A stretch of 34,074 nucleotides of DNA from Octopus bimaculoides. Its lineage: Eukaryota. The position numbers and the translations under genes were made by a program. This document shows positions 3,785 to 27,610 of this stretch, piece by piece. The stretch covers positions 89,093,659 to 89,127,732 of the forward strand of contig NC_068983.1 of NCBI RefSeq assembly GCF_001194135.2, given 5' to 3'. Every line of letters starts with the position of its first letter. Position 1 is the first letter of the stretch. The notes below the pieces were generated by a model, which made no database searches, was not told the DNA's origin, and saw nothing but the letters and a program-made list of their open reading frames with translations.

Positions 3785-6003
3785 CACTGGTCAACAGCCA
3801 ATTTTCATCAGGGATATTATATGATGTTTTATATGTAGTTTTGTCTGCAGATTTCAAAAGTGTAATCAGTTTCCTTCTATCAGACACAGTTTTTCTGTAA
3901 TTTTATGTTTTCATAATCTTTTCTTTTCATAAATTTTACTTTCTGTTTAAGGTGCCAAGTCATCATCAACTTCTACTCAGGATGTCAAGGCATTGCAAGA
4001 ACAGTCCTGATATATTTTGTCATGTCTGTGGTTCATTTACCACCAAAGCTCAGCAACGTGTCATCACAAGTGAAATCAAGGTCTACCAGTTATACTTTGG
4101 CTGCTCTCTTGGGGATCAAAATAAGAGTTGGGCGCCGCACATCATCTGCTCAGCTTGTTCAAATGGACTAAGAGATTGGCTAAATAAGAAGAAGAGAGCA
4201 ATGTCGTTTGCAATACCTATGATATGGAGAGAGCCAAGGGATCATTTCATGGGCTGTTATTTCTGCAGTGTTAATGTATGTGGGTTTACTGTAAAGACCA
4301 AGCATAAGATTGTGTATCCCAACTTGGAATCAGCAAGAAGACCAGTACTACACAACAATGATGATCTTCCTATTCCAATACCACCAGAAAATGGCCTTCA
4401 GATGTCTGACAAAGATGTATTTCCTGAAGAAAATACTACTGCTGTGGAAGACACTGAAGTGGATGCAGATTTCACGATTGAAAATGAAGATGTACCACAG
4501 AAATTTTCTCAAGGAGAGTTAAATGATTTAGTCAGAGACTTGTCATTGTCGAAGGATAAAGCTGAACTATTAGCATCTCGCCTACAAGAAAAGTGTCTGC
4601 TTAAGAAAGATGTTTGTATTACTCATTTCAGGAAGAGAAATAGGGATCTGACTTCATGCTTCTCTGTTGATGGACCACTTTGTTTCAGTANNNNNNNNNN
4701 NNNNNNNNNNNNNNNNNNNNNNNNNNNNNNNNNNNNNNNNNNNNNNNNNNNNNNNNNNNNNNNNNNNNNNNNNNNNNNNNNNNNNNNNNNNNNNNNNNNN
4801 NNNNNNNNNNNNNNNNNNNNNNNNNNNNNNNNNNNNNNNNNNNNNNNNNNNNNNNNNNNNNNNNNNNNNNNNNNNNNNNNNNNNNNNNNNNNNNNNNNNN
4901 NNNNNNNNNNNNNNNNNNNNNNNNNNNNNNNNNNNNNNNNNNNNNNNNNNNNNNNNNNNNNNNNNNNNNNNNNNNNNNNNNNNNNNNNNNNNNNNNNNNN
5001 NNNNNNNNNNNNNNNNNNNNNNNNNNNNNNNNNNNNNNNNNNNNNNNNNNNNNNNNNNNNNNNNNNNNNNNNNNNNNNNNNNNNNNNNNNNNNNNNNNNN
5101 NNNNNNNNNNNNNNNNNNNNNNNNNNNNNNNNNNNNNNNNNNNNNNNNNNNNNNNNNNNNNNNNNNNNNNNNNNNNNNNNNNNNNNNNNNNNNNNNNNNN
5201 NNNNNNNNNNNNNNNNNNNNNNNNNNNNNNNNNNNNNNNNNNNNNNNNNNNNNNNNNNNNNNNNNNNNNNNNNNNNNNNNNNNNNNNNNNNNNNNNNNNN
5301 NNNNNNNNNNNNNNNNNNNNNNNNNNNNNNNNNNNNNNNNNNNNNNNNNNNNNNNNNNNNNNNNNNNNNNNNNNNNNNNNNNNNNNNNNNNNNNNNNNNN
5401 NNNNNNNNNNNNNNNNNNNNNNNNNNNNNNNNNNNNNNNNNNNNNNNNNNNNNNNNNNNNNNNNNNNNNNNNNNNNNNNNNNNNNNNNNNNNNNNNNNNN
5501 NNNNNNNNNNNNNNNNNNNNNNNNNNNNNNNNNNNNNNNNNNNNNNNNNNNNNNNNNNNNNNNNNNNNNNNNNNNNNNNNNNNNNNNNNNNNNNNNNNNN
5601 NNNNNNNNNNNNNACGATATCAAGGATTTTGGAATGCAGGAATGTTAGCTGACTACTGTTGGATGTTATACAGGGATGAACCTGAGACAAAACACCATAG
5701 AAAGTCCAAATCCCAAAGATTTTAAGTTGTTATACATTCGAGTGTATTCTAACTTATTTGTACACAATAATTTTAATTTTGTACAATAAACAGCCATGAA
5801 ATTATCGTATCTTGTATTCATTATACTTTATATAGACATGCTTTACGTATCCTATAAGTTAAAACAGCAGATATCATTAACATGAAAATGTGACCTGATA
5901 GAGAAAATCGGACTTCGGATTCGTAATCAGCATCAAAAATTAACCCAGAAAAGTCAATCAGCAACTCTGATGATTAAAAAGAGTTTCATTTTGTTGACCA
6001 GTG
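3785..6003 (+). mobile_element. Chapaev3-like (CMC superfamily) DNA transposon, apparently full length
   Basis: Perfect 12-bp TIRs CACTGGTCAACA (3785-3796) / TGTTGACCAGTG (5992-6003); TAA target duplication at 3782-84 and 6004-06; internal transposase ORF. CAC termini and a 3-bp TWA TSD are the established Chapaev3 hallmarks. Confidence 0.85.
3982..5725 (+). CDS. Chapaev3-type transposase (middle hidden by N gap 4691-5613)
   Basis: Open from ATG 3982 to the gap, with a Chapa-type zinc finger pattern CHVCG...D...PHIICSAC...WREPRDH...CYFC. After the gap: RYQGFWNAGMLADYCW...KHHRKSK* ending at TAA 5723-5725. The frame offset across the gap is attributable to the estimated gap length. Confidence 0.85.
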
Positions 6004-12280: not shown

Positions 12281-13700
12281 TGTCATCATCATCATTTAAT
12301 GTTAGTTTTCTATGCTGGCATGGGTTTGACAGTCCATACATACTTCTCTCCCACATTTTGATCCTCTCTAACACACTATCTGGTAATCTGGAACACCTCA
12401 AGTTGCTGATCTTCAGGTCGTAAGACATTGGCAAACCTCTTCCTTTCTGTTTCCACCCTAGTTAGATAAAACTAATGCCTAGCTTCTCTTTTAGCTATCT
12501 GATATGGTTCTGTGTTACCCACATGCATCCACCCTTTCCAAGCCAATTTCTTCTGTTTTATAGCCCTGTCAACCTCTCTATTCTACTACTATGTCATCCT
12601 TGGTCTGGCAGATGCTTTGCTCCAACCACAGATTTGGTCTGTTGCCCTCAGTAGATTGTTCCATAAGAACTTCTAGTTGTCCTCTATATTGTATGTCTCC
12701 ATCTCTCCCTCTTCCTCATCAACAGCTTCATTAAGAATATCTCTTGCCCATATGAAGAATCCTTGAGTTTCTATAACCTCTTTTTCCGCGTTGGTTTGTG
12801 TCTCAGGATCCTTCTAGCCTGAAGTCCAAAGTCATTAACCACTAACCTATGTTGAGATGTACATTCTTCACCTGGGAAAGTTTGCATTCACAAGTGTATG
12901 CCTATTCCTATTTCCGGTGAGGATGTAGTTAATTTGGCTAGTGATCAGATGGCTGGCAGGTTTCCTGAGGTTGGTGTTGCAAACCATTAAGTTATTTGCA
13001 TCACAGAACTTCAGCAGCCTCCTCATTTCTCGAACCAAATCCATAGCCTCCATGAAAACCACCAGAGTGCTTTCCAACACAGCCATTGAAGTCCCCTGCA
13101 CAATGAGAATGTCATTGTCTTTTGTCATCGAGGTAGTCTGCAGAAAGGAATCATAGAAACAGTCCATTTGAATATCTGCAAGTCTGATATGTGGAGTATA
13201 TGCAAAGGTGACACTTTTACATTAAACAGGACTAATCTTAAGAATCCTATCACACACCCTGACTACCTCAATCACCTTATCCTCCCATTTCTCTGCCAAA
13301 AGAATACCTATGCCCTAACTAACCCATCACTGCTTTCCACTCAGAAGAATTTGGATCTATGTATTGCTTGCCAGTGAGGAGTCTTTCTGAGGTTCCCCTC
13401 CATCATACTTCTTGCACCACAGCACATGTCTACATGCCTCCACTCAAGCATTTCAACAATCTCACCAGACCTATCTTTCATTGTGCCAATGTTGATTGTA
13501 GTAGCTTTGAGCTTGTGAACTTGAGAGGGAAGTTGTAGGGGATGTTTTCAGCATTTGGAAAGATCTTTGCATTCACTTGCCTGAAGGTAGTCAGTTTAGT
13601 GTAAGCAGATGCAGGTACAGGTTGCAGCATGGATTACAATTACAATGGATTTCCTTCAGCCCTGCAAAGTCTTCATGGGTACACAGCTGCTATGGGGAGG
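12281..13700 (-). mobile_element. RTE-clade LINE derivative: APE domain and linker joined directly to 3' tail, RT absent
   Basis: Degenerate minus-strand translation: LKATTINIGTMKDRSGEIVEML...RLLKFCDANNLMVCNTN.RKPASHLIT..QINYILT...QHRLVV...ERKRFANVLRPEDQQLEVF. It then switches at ~12330 to the tail CCCATGCCAGCATAGAAAACTAACATTAAATGATGATGATG. Confidence 0.85.

Positions 13701-16467: not shown

Positions 16468-16509
<42 letters not shown>
16405..16509. repeat. Compound trinucleotide microsatellite (TTG)(GGA)(GAA)(GAT)
   Basis: Directly visible. Confidence 0.95.
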
Positions 16510-16510
<1 letters not shown>

Positions 16511-17681
16511 GTGAGGAAAGCAAAAGCTGGGTATGTATTCAAAAGCCACCAGCAAAACGTCAGCCATTTGTTATTCAAGGATGACCTCAAACTTTATGGT
16601 AAAAATGAAGCCCAAGTCAGTTCCCTCGTTGATGTGGTGTATGCCTTCAGTGCTGATATCAGAATGGAGTTCGGACTGAGAAAGTGTGGTGTGTTAATCT
16701 TGAAGAGAGGCAAAATCAAATGTATGGATGGGCTAACGATACTGTTGGGGGAGGTTATGAAGCAGATACAAGAGACAGGCTATAAGTATTTCGGGATTGT
16801 GAAAATGGACAAATTGATGGAGAATGAAATGACAGAAAAATTTAAGGTCTACTTGCGCAGACTGAGACTGATCCTTAAGTCGAAATTAAATGGACGGAAT
16901 AAGATTGAAGCTATCAACACCTGGGTGGTTTCACTCCTTAGATATGGAGCAGGAGTAATCACATGGACAGTAGATGAACTAAACAGCTTAGACAGAAAGA
17001 CAAGGAAGTTGCTAACTAGATATGGGTCATTCCACCCAAAAAGTGACACAGACAGACTGTATGTACCAAGAAAAAGAGGAGAAGAGGACTTATTGGATGC
17101 AAACACAGCATTAGAGCAGAAGAAAATAACATAGCATGGTATGTAAAAAAAATGCCATAGAACTGCTTTTATTAGAAGTAAGAAGGTCAGGCTTGTATAG
17201 GATGAAAGGTTGCAAAGATAAAGCACTATACAAGAAATTGAAAACGAATGAAATAGAAAATAGGTGGGTNNNNNNNNNNTGACAATATAGCCAGGCTTGT
17301 CCATTGGACACTCAGCAATAAGTATGGACTTGACAGAGCAAAAAATTGGTATGGCCACAAACCTGAAGGCATCGTCGAAAATAGAAATGCAAAGATCCTA
17401 TGGGATTTTATGATTCAGTGTGACCATGAGATAGAGAATAGGAAGCCAGACATAGTCTTAATTGAGAAAGAAAACAAACTATGCTGGATCATAGATATAG
17501 CATACCCAGCTGACAACAAGGTATGCAATAAGGAAGAAAGAAAAGTCGAGGGATATGAGAGGTTAGCTTGGGAAGTTAAGCAGTTATGGTCAATGAAAAA
17601 GGCAGCAGTAGTACCAATAATTGTCAGAGCCTTGGGGACAGTGAGCAAAATGTCAAGAAGTACGTGGAACAAATAGGGGCT
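16510..17681 (+). mobile_element. R4/Dong-like non-LTR retrotransposon fragment (RT C-terminal half plus restriction-like endonuclease), degenerate
   Basis: SHLLFKDDLKLYG, MEFGLRKC, GYKYFG, KSKLNGRNKIEAINTW, HPKSDTDRLYVPRKRG; then LWDFMIQCDHEIENRKPDIVLIEKENKLCWIIDIAYPADNKV..KE...YERLAWEVKQLW..VVPII..ALG (PD-(D/E)xK-type RLE). Contains frameshifts and a 10-N gap. Confidence 0.85.
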
Positions 17682-21791: not shown

Positions 21792-22200
21792 CTGGTCGAT
21801 GCCAGTGCCACCTAACTGGCTCCTGTGCTGGTGGCACATAAAAAGCACCATTCAATCGTGGCCAATGCCAGTGCTGCCTGACTGGATCCTGTGCTGGTGT
21901 CATGTAAAAAGCACCATTCAAGCACGACCAATGCCAGTGCCACCTAATTGGCACATAAAAAGCACAATTTGAGTGTGGTCAATGCCAGTGCCTCCCGACT
22001 GGCTCCCATGCTGGTGGCACATAAAAAGCACCCACTACACTCTGGGAGTGGTTGGCATTAGGAAGAGCATCCAGCTGTAAAAACCCTGCCAGATCAGATT
22101 GGAGCCTGGTGTAGCCTCCTGGCTTGCCAGTCCTCAGTCAAACCATCCAATCCATGCCAGCATGGAAAGTGAGCATTAAACGATGATGATGATGATGATG
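21792..22200 (+). mobile_element. SINE with internal ~60-bp tandem repeats and RTE-type tail
   Basis: About four GCCAGTGCC...GGCACATAAAAAGCACCA units, then aggaagagcatccagctgta...CCATGCCAGCATGGAAAG..TTAAAC(GAT)n. Confidence 0.85.
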
Positions 22201-24122: not shown

Positions 24123-24466
24123 AAGCACCATTCATGCATGGGTTGTTTCCAGTGCCACCTGACTGGTTCCCCGTGCTGGTGGCATGTAAAAAGTACCATC
24201 CAAATGTGGTCGATGCCAGCCCCCCTCGCTCCGACTGGCTCCTGTGCCGGTAGCATGTAAAAAGTACCATCCAAACATGGCCAATGCCAGTGGCACATAA
24301 AAAGCACCCACTATACTCTCGGAGTGGTTGGCGTTAAGAAGGGCATCCAGCTGTAGAAACATTGCCAGATCAGATTAGAGATTGGTGCAGTCTCCTGGCT
24401 TGCCAGTTCCAAGTCAAACTGTCAAACCCATGCCAGCATAGAAAATGGACGTTAAACAATGGATGA
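24123..24466 (+). mobile_element. SINE, same family as 21792-22200
   Basis: Same tandem units and tail CCATGCCAGCATAGAAAATGGACGTTAAAC; it interrupts the gypsy relic. Confidence 0.85.
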
Positions 24467-24802
24467 TAATTTCATATTGCACTGTAGAGAAATAACTAAT
24501 CCTTTTACAGAACAATTATACAACAGAAGGTAGAAAATTTTTAAAAATGCAAAAATTATACTAACAGCAAATAAACTACAGGGAGAAAAACAACTAGCTT
24601 TAGATCTCTGAATGAGATCTATGTAGTAACAGTACAGTATAGTAAAGTTTATTTGCCAACATAACATGGCAGTCCTGTTACTATGATACTACTTTTTAAT
24701 CCCAAGGAAACATCTTTTCCAGCTGGTTATCGACATATGATCTGTGTCCGAGACACACTGTAAGTAAGAGAGCTTACTGCTCCCTTCTAACCATTAGCAG
24801 TA

Positions 24803-24848
24803 CCAGCAAACCAATGGCTTCTGGGTAATTTCCTGTCTTCAGTGCTGG
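24803..24848 (-). ncRNA. Minimal type I hammerhead motif, family C copy 1
   Basis: CCAGCA CUGAAGA CAGGAAAUUACCCA GAAG C CAUUG GUU UGCUGG: perfect 6-bp stem I, GAAA mutated to GAAG. Confidence 0.65.
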
Positions 24849-25160
24849 ACAACTACCTGGCTAGAGATAGTAGCTACCTGACCTTGCTCATAGTATATAC
24901 TTATCGAAGTGACTGACAGTCACTGATCTCGTAAAAAGAAAAACAACTAGTCTTAAATCTCTGAATGAGATTTATGTAGTAACAGTAGCGTGTAGTATGG
25001 TTTATTTGCCAACATAACATGGCAGTCCTCCACAGGACTATGTTACTACTTTTTAACCCCAAGGAAAACATCTTTTCCAGCTGATTATCGACATATGATC
25101 TGTGTCCGAGACACACTGTAAGTAAGGGGGCTTACTGCTCCCTTCTAGCCATTAGCAGTA

Positions 25161-25206
25161 CCTGCAGATCAATGGTTTCTGGATAATTTCTTGTCTTCAG
25201 TTCTGG
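25161..25206 (-). ncRNA. Minimal type I hammerhead motif, family C copy 2
   Basis: CCAGAA CUGAAGA CAAGAAAUUAUCCA GAAAC CAUUG AUC UGCAGG: core intact, stems decayed. Confidence 0.6.
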
Positions 25207-25576
25207 ACAACCACCTGGCTAGAGACAGCAGCTACCTGACCTTATTCACAGTATATACTTATCAAAGTGACTGACAGTCACTGATCTCGTAAGGAGAAAA
25301 ACAACTAACGCTCCCTTACTTACAGTATGACTCGAACACCAACTGAAAAAGATGTTTTCCTAGGGTTAAAAAGTAGTAACATAGTCCTATGCAGGACTGC
25401 CACATTATGTTGGCAAATAAACCTTATTACACGGTACTATTACTACATAGATCTCATTCAGAGATTTAAAACTAGTTGTTTTTCTCCTTACAAGATCAGT
25501 GACTGTCAGTCACTTCAATAAGTATATATTGTGAGTAAGGTTGGGTGGCTGCTGTCTCAAGCCAGGTGGTTGTCCA

Positions 25577-26994
25577 TAGTCTGTAGGTTTGCGGCTCGGC
25601 ACCTGGAGCAGCAAGCCGATAACGTCCAGTGTTGTTGGACACTGGACGGATGGCCCTGTTAAGTTGCTCGGAGTTTGGTTTGGTCCGGACTCCCAGACGG
25701 AGAAAAATTGGAGCGAGGTGACGAACAGGGTAGAAGCGCTATCCCGGACTTGGTCTGGAAGGGCGCTGTCCCTGAAAGGAAGGGCGGAGGTGGTGCAGAC
25801 GTTTATTGCGTCAGTTATCACCTACCGCCTCACCGTCGTCCCCTGCCCTGATTTGTGGCTAAACAAGCTGGTTCGGATTCTCTTCCGCTTTTTGTGGAGG
25901 GGAAAGCCGCTTGTGAGGCNNNNNNNNNNNNNNNNNNNNNNNNNNNNNNNNNNNNNNNNNNNNNNNNNNNNNNNNNNNNNNNNNNNNNNNNNNNNNNNNN
26001 NNNNNNNNNNNNNNNNNNNNNNNNNNNNNNNNNNNNNNNNNNNNNNNNNNNNNNNNNNNNNNNNNNNNNNNNNNNNNNNNNNNNNNNNNNNNNNNNNNNN
26101 NNNNNNNNNNNNNNNNNNNNNNNNNNNNNNNNNNNNNNNNNNNNNNNNNNNNNNNNNNNNNNNNNNNNNNNNNNNNNNNNNNNNNNNNNNNNNNNNNNNN
26201 NNNNNNNNNNNNNNNNNNNNNNNNNNNNNNNNNNNNNNNNNNNNNNNNNNNNNNNNNNNNNNNNNNNNNNNNNNNNNNNNNNNNNNNNNNNNNNNNNNNN
26301 NNNNNNNNNNNNNNNNNNNNNNNNNNNNNNNNNNNNNNNNNNNNNNNNNNNNNNNNNNNNNNNNNNNNNNNNNNNNNNNNNNNNNNNNNNNNNNNNNNNN
26401 NNNNNNNNNNNNNNNNNNNNNNNNNNNNNNNNNNNNNNNNNNNNNNNNNNNNNNNNNNNNNNNNNNNNNNNNNNNNNNNNNNNNNNNNNNNNNNNNNNNN
26501 NNNNNNNNNNNNNNNNNNNNNNNNNNNNNNNNNNNNNNNNNNNNNNNNNNNNNNNNNNNNNNNNNNNNNNNNNNNNNNNNNNNNNNNNNNNNNNNNNNNN
26601 NNNNNNNNNNNNNNNNNNNNNNNNNNNNNNNNNNNNNNNNNNNNNNNNNNNNNNNNNNNNNNNNNNNNNNNNNNNNNNNNNNNNNNNNNNNNNNNNNNNN
26701 NNNNNNNNNNNNNNNNNNNNNNNNNNNNNNNNNNNNNNNNNNNNNNNNNNNNNNNNNNNNNNNNNNNNNNNNNNNNNNNNNNNNNNNNGTAGACTGGTGT
26801 ACCCTGGAATTAGGTGTAAACCATTGGTAATATTACAAGTTTTGTAGAAAAATTTTTAAATATATATATTTTTAAACGTATATTTAAAAAAAAAAAAAAA
26901 GCTAAAAAGACTCACTAAATGACAATTCTTAAATGTTTGTAGTGTCCTGTATTGTCCAATCTATGTAAGATATTATTATCGTAATAAAGAGAAC
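25577..26994 (+). mobile_element. 5'-truncated Tx1/L1-clade LINE with 16-bp TSD (spans N gap)
   Basis: GC-rich open frame ...PVKLLGVWFG...NWSEV..RVEALSRTWSGRALSLKGRAEVVQTFIASVITYRLTVVPCP...LFRFLWRGKPLVR (post-RT region of L1/Tx1 ORF2). GCCAGGTGGTTGTCCA is duplicated at 25561-25576 and 26995-27010, with the host repeat resuming in register. Confidence 0.8.
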
Positions 26995-27007
26995 GCCAGG
27001 TGGTTGT

Positions 27008-27053
27008 CCAGCACTGAAGACAAGAAATTGCCCTGAAACTATTGGTCTACTGG
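27008..27053 (+). ncRNA. Minimal type I hammerhead motif, family C copy 3 (best conserved)
   Basis: CCAGCA(27008-13) CUGAAGA(27014-20) CAAGAAAUUGCCCU GAAAC(27035-39) UAUUG GUC(27045-47) UACUGG(27048-53). Confidence 0.72.
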
Positions 27054-27610
27054 TACTGCTAACGGGTAGGAGGGAGTAGTAAGCCCCCTTACTTACAGTA
27101 TGTTTCAGACACAGATCAGGTGTTAATAACCAGCTGGAAAAGATGTTTTCCTGGAGTTAAAAAGTAGTAACATATTCCTATGCAGGACTGCCATGTTATG
27201 TTGGCAAATAAACTTTACTAAATAAACTACAATTATTTATGAATATTAAAGAAAAATTATCTTAATTTACTTTATTGATTCATCCACTAGCAGAGCACAT
27301 TTCTTTTTTTATCCACACCAAGCGACTACATGTGTATGTATAAGAAAAAAGATATTTACTGACGGAAAAGTAAGCTGCTCAAATAAATTACTTTTTACAT
27401 ATCTTTTTCTAAATCATTGTGGATAGATCCCAGCAATGTGCGGAATAAAATGTTTTGTAAGCAATTTGTAACCCACATTAACATTTGTTTTTTAATGAGG
27501 GTGATAGGAATGCAGAAACACCAGGATTGGTCGTGTGGAACCAGAGACATAGCCAGCAAGATTTGGTGAGAAAAAAAAATATTTATGATTGGAAAAGATC
27601 ATAGAAATAC

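Follow-up and report, generated by a model that had tools for sequence, protein, structure and literature searches.

How does a short repeat that codes for no protein come to stand in a genome as a sharply bounded, partly inverted tandem, and what kind of enzyme copied it there? The question is raised by a block at 24581–27219 of a 34,074-nucleotide stretch of Octopus bimaculoides DNA (assembly GCF_001194135.2, contig NC_068983.1, positions 89,093,659–89,127,732; hereafter the window), which a first-pass annotation, made by eye from the letters, had described as a retrozyme-like insertion of units with a hammerhead ribozyme motif. With a little more than even confidence, we favour the reading that the block records one old retrotransposition of a non-autonomous, non-coding 358-bp tandem repeat, of the type known in metazoans as non-LTR (long terminal repeat) retrozymes or as repeats dependent on Penelope-like elements (PLEs).

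Two arms of a 358-bp repeat lie head to head within a single target-site duplication

We read the block at 24300–27500, and three independent repeat analyses (Tandem Repeats Finder (TRF), repeat finding and blastn) agreed on its layout. The left arm (24581–25309; RNA sense on the minus strand) consists of 2.04 head-to-tail units of the 358-bp repeat, as delimited by TRF, blastn and monomer alignment. TRF applied to 24582–25309 gave a period of 358 with 2.0 copies and 89% matches, and the units of this arm are 89–90% identical. Between 25309 and 25310 the orientation of the unit flips, as seen by both repeat finding and blastn. The right arm runs in the opposite orientation, such that the two arms stand head to head; it totals ~1.35 units and comes in two parts. 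The first part (25310–25576, plus strand) starts at unit position ~36 and lacks 18 nt internally. The second part (27011–27219, plus strand) runs across one copy of the motif and stops at unit position ~172, where its RNA 3' end adjoins the right-hand duplication described below. Thus, the two head-to-tail units and the inversion at ~25310 that the first-pass annotation had proposed are confirmed. Its ~1.4 further units correspond to about 1.35 inverted units that are not contiguous, being split by a 1.4-kb insertion that it had missed, and its ~355-nt unit, correctly called as tandem and non-coding, has a period of 358.

The whole composite is flanked by a 12-bp target-site duplication, AAATAAACTACA, with exact matches at 24569–24580 on the left and 27220–27231 on the right, as had been annotated. 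These are the only two exact copies of AAATAAACTACA in the window, one at each edge of the block, and each lies within 1–2 nt of the point where unit-unit homology stops; two fixed sites would agree at 12/12 positions by chance with a probability of ~2e-7. The pre-insertion site is AT-rich (...TTATACTAACAGCAAATAAACTACA|ATTATTTATG...), and the empty target before insertion would have read TTATACTAACAGCAAATAAACTACAATTATTTATG.

We found no second duplication at the central junction; the sole pair flanks the entire composite, indicating a single insertion event. Pairwise identity across all unit segments is 87–90%, and no pair stands out. This uniformity fits units that were identical at the time of insertion and then decayed by ~6% each. 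Both observations support the earlier proposal of a single retrotransposition event. Two successive insertions were considered and rejected, since only one duplication pair surrounds the composite. By blastn, there is no second copy of the 358-bp unit elsewhere in the 34-kb window.

One local feature of the arms differs from the rest. A 38-nt stretch of the last unit of the left arm (24640–24677) is 100% complementary to the outer end of the right arm (27183–27220). The arms are otherwise 86–90% alike, and a perfect stretch of 38 nt has a chance of ~1% at 88% identity. It could reflect chance, local gene conversion, or constraint near the start of reverse transcription.

The repeat unit is non-coding and moderately structured

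The repeat unit (24809–25166, minus strand) is 358 bp long with 41% GC. It contains no open reading frame (ORF) of more than 71 amino acids (aa) and has no protein relatives, in agreement with the first-pass annotation. A profile of its longest open frame matched none of 5.8 billion proteins, and an exact look-up of the 64-aa and 71-aa ORFs of the unit, and of one neighbouring ORF, found none of them on record. A metagenome scan with the hammerhead-like motif returned 0 matches, and a scan with an invariant 18-mer of the unit returned 47 contigs, all of which matched only the seed give or take a few bases. The unit RNA folds better than shuffled sequences on both strands (z = -2.3 for the sense and -3.4 for the antisense strand), consistent with moderate structure. 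We also observed that the unit is depleted of CpG (5 observed versus 15 expected; observed/expected 0.33), and that it holds several perfect local palindromes, e.g. GTGTCTCGGACAC and AGTGACTGTCAGTCACT.

A younger LINE, with its own duplication, splits the right arm

The interruption of the right arm at 25576/27011 is a nested long interspersed nuclear element (LINE) of the apurinic/apyrimidinic endonuclease (APE) type, 5'-truncated and on the plus strand (25577–26994). It is flanked by a 16-bp duplication, GCCAGGTGGTTGTCCA, whose copies at 25561–25576 and 26995–27010 form a 100% direct repeat; the right copy is also unit sequence, lying immediately 5' of the motif. The element comprises the C-terminal part of a reverse transcriptase, then an assembly gap of 869 N of estimated length (25920–26788), and then a non-coding, A/T-rich 3' end. 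Coding homology covers ~25580–25918 on the plus strand (tblastn start 25571/25580) and corresponds to the reverse transcriptase just downstream of the YxDD box; one relative, P0002, carries YVDDV. An exhaustive HMMER search with the 110-aa fragment returned 2426 relatives, the nearest database relative of the element being only 66% identical. Pfam gave no match for the fragment itself, and its class came from full-length relatives. The long or full-length relatives carry Exo_endo_phos (an AP-type endonuclease), RVT_1 and zf-RVT, indicating that the fragment belongs to an APE-type LINE and not to a PLE.

Because the run of N lies wholly inside the LINE, the gap leaves the repeat units unaffected. 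Right of the gap, tblastn found no coding homology, and the 206 nt there look like a 3' untranslated region. Full-length relatives extend 271–321 aa (813–963 nt) past the aligned part, and 1076 nt are available from 25919 to the end of the LINE. Continuity of the LINE across the gap is therefore compatible in size, and appears probable from duplication, strand and size only. When the LINE and one copy of its duplication are removed, the right arm aligns unbroken to units 2 and 1 (455 nt, 86%, blastn). We conclude that the LINE inserted later than the repeat block and is unrelated to the repeat element.

Both arms end at internal positions of the unit, as in insertions of Penelope-like elements

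We cut the arms at the predicted hammerhead cleavage site and aligned the pieces. The left arm spans unit position ~216, then two cleavage sites, to position ~232; the right arm spans unit position ~36, then one predicted cleavage site, to position ~172. Each arm has its RNA 3' end against the target duplication on its own side, and the central junction unites the two RNA 5' ends: beside the left duplication, the plus strand is unit antisense, starting from the RNA 3' side, and beside the right duplication it is unit sense, ending at an RNA 3' side. The two outward RNA 3' ends are 59–60 nt apart in the unit sequence. None of the three junctions (0/3) falls at the cleavage site, indicating that no self-cleaved linear monomer served as template; the junctions fit a circular RNA as well as an uncleaved multimer. 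The left end of the block is 227 nt from the predicted cleavage site, close to the ~230 nt reported in the first-pass annotation. That annotation took this distance to be as expected of a circular template, which is not diagnostic: uncleaved multimers with internal initiation are equally expected to give it (PMC11167929).

Inverted arms of tandem units bounded by a direct repeat are also what a foldback DNA transposon would present, with long inverted terminal repeats of tandem subrepeats and a target duplication. The outer termini of the block, however, are unrelated over 30 nt (GGGAGAAAAACAAC... versus AGTAAAGTTTATTTGCC...) and lie 59 nt apart in the unit, the arms are of unequal length, and there is no transposase. 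Because neither outer terminus is an inverted copy of the other, we rejected this explanation and regard it as very improbable.

The layout has the hallmark of PLE insertion, with 2.04 units and ~1.35 inverted units head to head inside one 12-bp duplication. A typical PLE insertion consists of a partial tandem and an adjacent inverted, 5'-truncated copy, with one-sided extension and a duplication of variable length (PMC8557442). Purified PLE protein cleaves and extends both strands, starts reverse transcription in vitro at two internal RNA sites without homology to the target, and prefers AT-rich ATT sites; hammerhead cleavage is dispensable for it (PMC11167929). The block shares with PLEs the partial tandem plus inverted truncated copy, the single duplication at an AT-rich site, and the two apparent internal starts. 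Its PLE-style, retrotransposed and retrozyme-like nature is well supported by this structure.

One explanation for the likeness is that the unit is the pseudo-LTR of an autonomous PLE, the locus being a heavily 5'-truncated copy of such an element. Hammerheads do occur in PLE pseudo-LTRs (PMC4209133), and in Xenopus retrozymes share homology with pseudo-LTRs (Li, Clavereau & Pollet 2026 preprint, 10.64898/2026.07.22.740005). Strong 5' truncation, tandem units and inversion are frequent in PLE insertions (PMC8557442), and octopus genomes hold ~30 Penelope families (PMC13282606). By contrast, a template of the form pseudo-LTR–ORF–pseudo-LTR would give the 3' sequence of the ORF after one pseudo-LTR, and here unit follows unit for up to 2.04 repeats in the 5' direction from the outer ends, with no coding sequence. 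The only coding DNA in the block is that of the APE-type LINE, which has its own duplication. A pseudo-LTR origin is thus disfavoured at this locus, and we consider it unlikely, although it may hold for the family as a whole.

For a non-autonomous tandem repeat, the structure suggests the following course of events. A staggered break at the AT-rich sequence ...CAGC[AAATAAACTACA]ATTATT... would have left two 12-nt 3' overhangs, and from both 3'-OH ends reverse transcription would have proceeded on unit RNA, either multimeric or circular, with initiation at two internal unit positions, ~172 and ~232 nt past the predicted cleavage site. One cDNA would have extended for 2.04 units and the other for ~1.35 units; their far ends would have been joined head to head at 25309/25310, and fill-in would have yielded the 12-bp duplication. 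Both arms have the orientation expected if the two 3' overhangs left by a staggered cut each acted as a primer. The unit copies would then have decayed by ~6% each, and the 5'-truncated APE-type LINE would have entered the right arm afterwards, making its 16-bp duplication. On an octopus calibration in which a Jukes-Cantor distance of 0.065 corresponds to 18 million years and 0.09 to 25 million years (PMC13282606), the age of the insertion may be put, roughly, at 15–20 million years.

Each unit carries a hammerhead-like motif with a vestigial helix II

Two copies of the motif lie in the left arm on the minus strand, u1 at 24803–24848 (CCAGCA CUGAAGA CAGGAAAUUACCCA GAAG CCAUUGG UU UGCUGG) and u2 at 25161–25206 (CCAGAA CUGAAGA CAAGAAAUUAUCCA GAAA CCAUUGA UC UGCAGG), and a third, the plus copy, lies in the right arm at 27008–27053 on the plus strand (CCAGCA CUGAAGA CAAGAAAUUGCCCU GAAA CUAUUGG UC UACUGG). 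The order of the core elements is that of a hammerhead: CUGAAGA is present in 3/3 copies, GAAA in 2/3 (u1 has GAAG), and UC, UC or UU in 3/3. Helix I (CCAGCA/UGCUGG) pairs at 6/6 positions in u1 and likewise in the consensus; the plus copy keeps 5/6 of the pairs, and u2 keeps 4/6. Helix III (ACC-AUU-GGU) is short and near-palindromic; ACCAUUGGU could pair with a second copy at 8/9 positions, and in the proposed course of events such a helix would be suited to pairing between two unit copies. A helix III of this kind is described for metazoan type I hammerheads that act as dimers (PMC4209133), and the palindromic helix III of the unit, suggestive of dimeric action, is a further likeness to PLEs.

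The copies differ in what remains of the rest. In u1, helix II has only two G-C pairs, which are not adjacent to the core. The core of u2 is intact, with a C.A mismatch in helix III and without a helix II. The plus copy also has an intact core, a helix III of 2 bp plus a U.G pair, and no stable helix II. The consensus drawn by eye in the first-pass annotation, and said to be carried by every full unit, matches no single copy. Its CAGG...CCU stem is a chimera that takes the G from u1 and the U from the plus copy; no more than three pairs form in it (-0.7 kcal/mol), and the C that follows CUGAAGA has no partner. What stands of the proposed hammerhead is the invariant CUGAAGA, the 6-bp helix I and the near-palindromic stem III, without a closable stem II and with GAAG in one copy. 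Minimum-energy folds of the motifs are not better than those of shuffled sequences, and helix II never forms in them.

PLE hammerheads usually have an unpaired base at the 5' side of helix II and a helix II of 6–8 bp (PMC4209133). The C after CUGAAGA could be such an unpaired base, a possible further likeness to PLEs, and would hence be no defect in itself. By contrast, the minimal hammerheads of PLEs have a helix II of 6–8 bp and the unit here has almost none. A dimeric helix II formed through the AAUU palindrome was examined by eye and rejected; three positions beside each core would be left unpaired. An origin of the present sequence by CpG decay of a closed helix II (CGGG...CCCG, -4.7 kcal/mol) is possible, and would require u1, u2 and the plus copy to have changed alike. 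We interpret the motif as a type I hammerhead of derived form, of which no copy at this locus retains more than a vestige of helix II. It follows that u1, u2 and the plus copy, judged from their sequences, are probably poor or dead ribozymes, and that the hammerhead in these copies is degenerate at best.

We next considered whether the likeness to a hammerhead might be fortuitous, such that the block would be an ordinary short satellite or an unclassified repeat that was inserted or rearranged. The lack of helix II, of an Rfam match, and of folds better than those of shuffles would all be explained in this way. We therefore used a descriptor of our own (core, at least 5/6 helix I pairs and a minimal helix III, without helix II), which only the plus copy passes. 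In random sequence of the same composition, this descriptor is expected 0.18 times per window and ~0.002 times per 358-bp unit (both strands). The first figure leaves room for an accidental match in the window, and a scan of many windows would meet chance matches; within the single unit, by contrast, a chance motif is unlikely. Moreover, in the consensus all 6 bp of helix I form, placed exactly around the core, and helix III is near-palindromic, like that of known metazoan hammerheads (PMC4209133). The motif also sits in a tandem repeat whose layout is of PLE type, and the window holds a second such pairing of motif and repeat. Overall, we give little credence to a fortuitous resemblance.

Retrozymes are the closest known counterparts of the repeat

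Metazoan non-LTR retrozymes are non-coding tandem repeats of 150–450 bp with less than 50% GC, type I hammerheads and target duplications of more than 4 bp, the units of mussel retrozymes being 350–390 bp (PMC7229834). The repeat described here resembles them in all of these respects, as a 358-bp, 41% GC, non-coding tandem unit with a type I-like motif in each unit and a duplication longer than 4 bp. It differs in its vestigial helix II, whereas in published invertebrate retrozymes helix II of the hammerhead has 4 bp and cleavage is efficient. It differs also in its inverted arms and the offset of its ends, which are not described in PMC7229834 or 10.64898/2026.07.22.740005. In the literature searched, neither retrozymes nor hammerhead repeats are reported from cephalopods.

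Satellite 2 of newts and the hammerhead repeats of axolotl have units of ~330–350 bp and a palindromic helix III so weak that folding takes two copies. The octopus repeat is similar to them in unit length and in having a type I motif whose helix III is likewise palindromic and weak. By contrast, the newt and axolotl repeats have an intact helix II, loop-loop contacts and very long arrays, whereas the octopus repeat forms a short composite with defined edges.

Several observations weigh against the view that a PLE integrated a retrozyme-type repeat at this site. The closable stem II that the first-pass annotation had supposed is absent: helix II cannot be closed in any of the three copies or in their majority consensus, the folding energy of the 14-nt helix II segment being -0.3, 0 and 0 kcal/mol in the three copies and 0 in the consensus. 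Parsimony over the three copies favours an unpaired CAAG...CCCA, which is also the majority consensus, as the sequence that was inserted. The Rfam hammerhead models, named in the first-pass annotation as a means of detection, gave no match to the window at the gathering score, or to 3 kb and 96 nt at E<=10; little weight attaches to this silence, since the second motif family of the window escapes the models too (641 nt, E<=10). Neither the block nor the window contains a PLE reading frame (reverse transcriptase plus GIY-YIG), the only reverse transcriptase in the block being that of the APE-type LINE, and the element would therefore be non-autonomous. The offset of 59–60 nt between the two ends compares with tails of 30–40 nt in PLEs, the same kind of feature with another length. 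No further copy of the unit was retrieved from the protein or metagenome collections searched; its status as a family, an autonomous partner and its expression are presumed by analogy. Lastly, twin priming, as in L1, gives the same head-to-head layout with one duplication pair.

This last point raises the possibility that a LINE mobilised the element, with the inversion arising from twin priming and the motif being irrelevant to mobility. L1 twin-priming inversions share with the block the head-to-head arms, the single duplication pair, and the use of both 3' break ends as primers. LINEs are abundant, with one nested in the block and others in the window. In the retrozyme literature, PLEs have been proposed as the mobilisers, and LINEs are listed as possible mobilisers too (Cervera & de la Pena 2020, Nucleic Acids Research, PMC7229834). 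By contrast, neither 3' end of the block has poly(A), a microsatellite tail or any other LINE-like tail, or similarity to the 3' end of the nested LINE, and the template was a tandem repeat. In addition, two non-homologous internal starts with extension of both strands are documented for PLEs and not for LINEs (PMC11167929). Mobilisation by a LINE therefore appears to us quite unlikely, and a PLE the more probable enzyme.

The window holds a second motif-bearing tandem repeat

A second tandem repeat, within a (TA)n/(TG)n microsatellite, occupies 1301–2299 on the plus strand, with a unit of ~552 bp (1301–1852) present in 1.8 copies of 90% identity. Its motifs lie at 1378–1437 and 1930–1989 on the plus strand. 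Copy 1 reads GCUACA CUGAAGA [31 nt] GAAA CGCG UC UGUGGC, with an intact core, a helix I paired at 6/6 positions and a loop, CGCG, that is palindromic. In copy 2 the core reads CUGAAGC, and a helix II of 4+4 bp is closable (GAGA/UCUC, AAGU/ACUU; -3.2 kcal/mol). Rfam did not detect the motif of this repeat. From its sequence, the second repeat looks like a better hammerhead candidate than the 358-bp unit. Outside the core there is no similarity between the 358-bp and 552-bp families. The presence of a second motif-bearing tandem repeat in the same window indicates that such elements recur in this genome.

A structural footprint for integration of retrozyme-like repeats

For the idea that retrozymes spread via circular RNAs copied by PLEs, the evidence so far has been co-occurrence and sequence kinship with pseudo-LTRs. 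The locus described here is a clean-edged, retrozyme-like insertion that shows PLE hallmarks, namely tandem and inverted arms, RNA 3' ends at a duplicated target, and two apparent starts. Its main value is structural, as a clean footprint that ties retrozyme-like repeats to integration in the manner of PLEs. If the pattern holds genome-wide, this footprint could be counted to test the link. The element inserted although its hammerhead was probably without a working helix II, in agreement with the in vitro data for PLEs (PMC11167929). For annotation, the window adds two unreported hammerhead-associated repeat families in a cephalopod-type genome, both missed by Rfam-based scans.

A bolder interpretation is possible, though we hold it to be doubtful. 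The locus may preserve, as a fossil, the integration of a tandem RNA of retrozyme type through PLE-specific priming, double-strand and internally initiated, and cephalopods may have at least two such families, one with a helix II so reduced that it acts only with the help of protein or not at all. If this were true, the block would be direct structural evidence for PLE mobilisation of retrozymes, which is missing from the retrozyme literature searched, and the spread of retrozymes would be independent of self-cleavage.

Other features of the window

Transposon-like open frames occur at 3952–4689 (plus strand), 16508–17134 (plus strand) and 12868–13167 (minus strand). These include a Cys/His-rich N-terminus that runs into a gap, a reverse transcriptase-like stretch after long GAA/GAT microsatellites, and an endonuclease-like piece. 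Pfam gave no match at E<=0.01 for any of these frames; four ORFs of the window besides the LINE fragment were compared with Pfam, all without a match. Remnants that resemble short interspersed nuclear elements (SINEs) lie at 24170–24470 and 21799–21951, with tandem subrepeats of 66–71 bp (CCYGTGCYGGTRGCAYRTAAAAAG...) followed by GGCATCCAGCTGTAGAAAC...CCATGCCAGCATAGAAAATGGACGTTAAAC; they presumably belong with the abundant SINEs of octopus, which we take them to resemble, and they give the window a cephalopod look. Overall, the window appears to be repeat-rich and gene-poor, with five assembly gaps.

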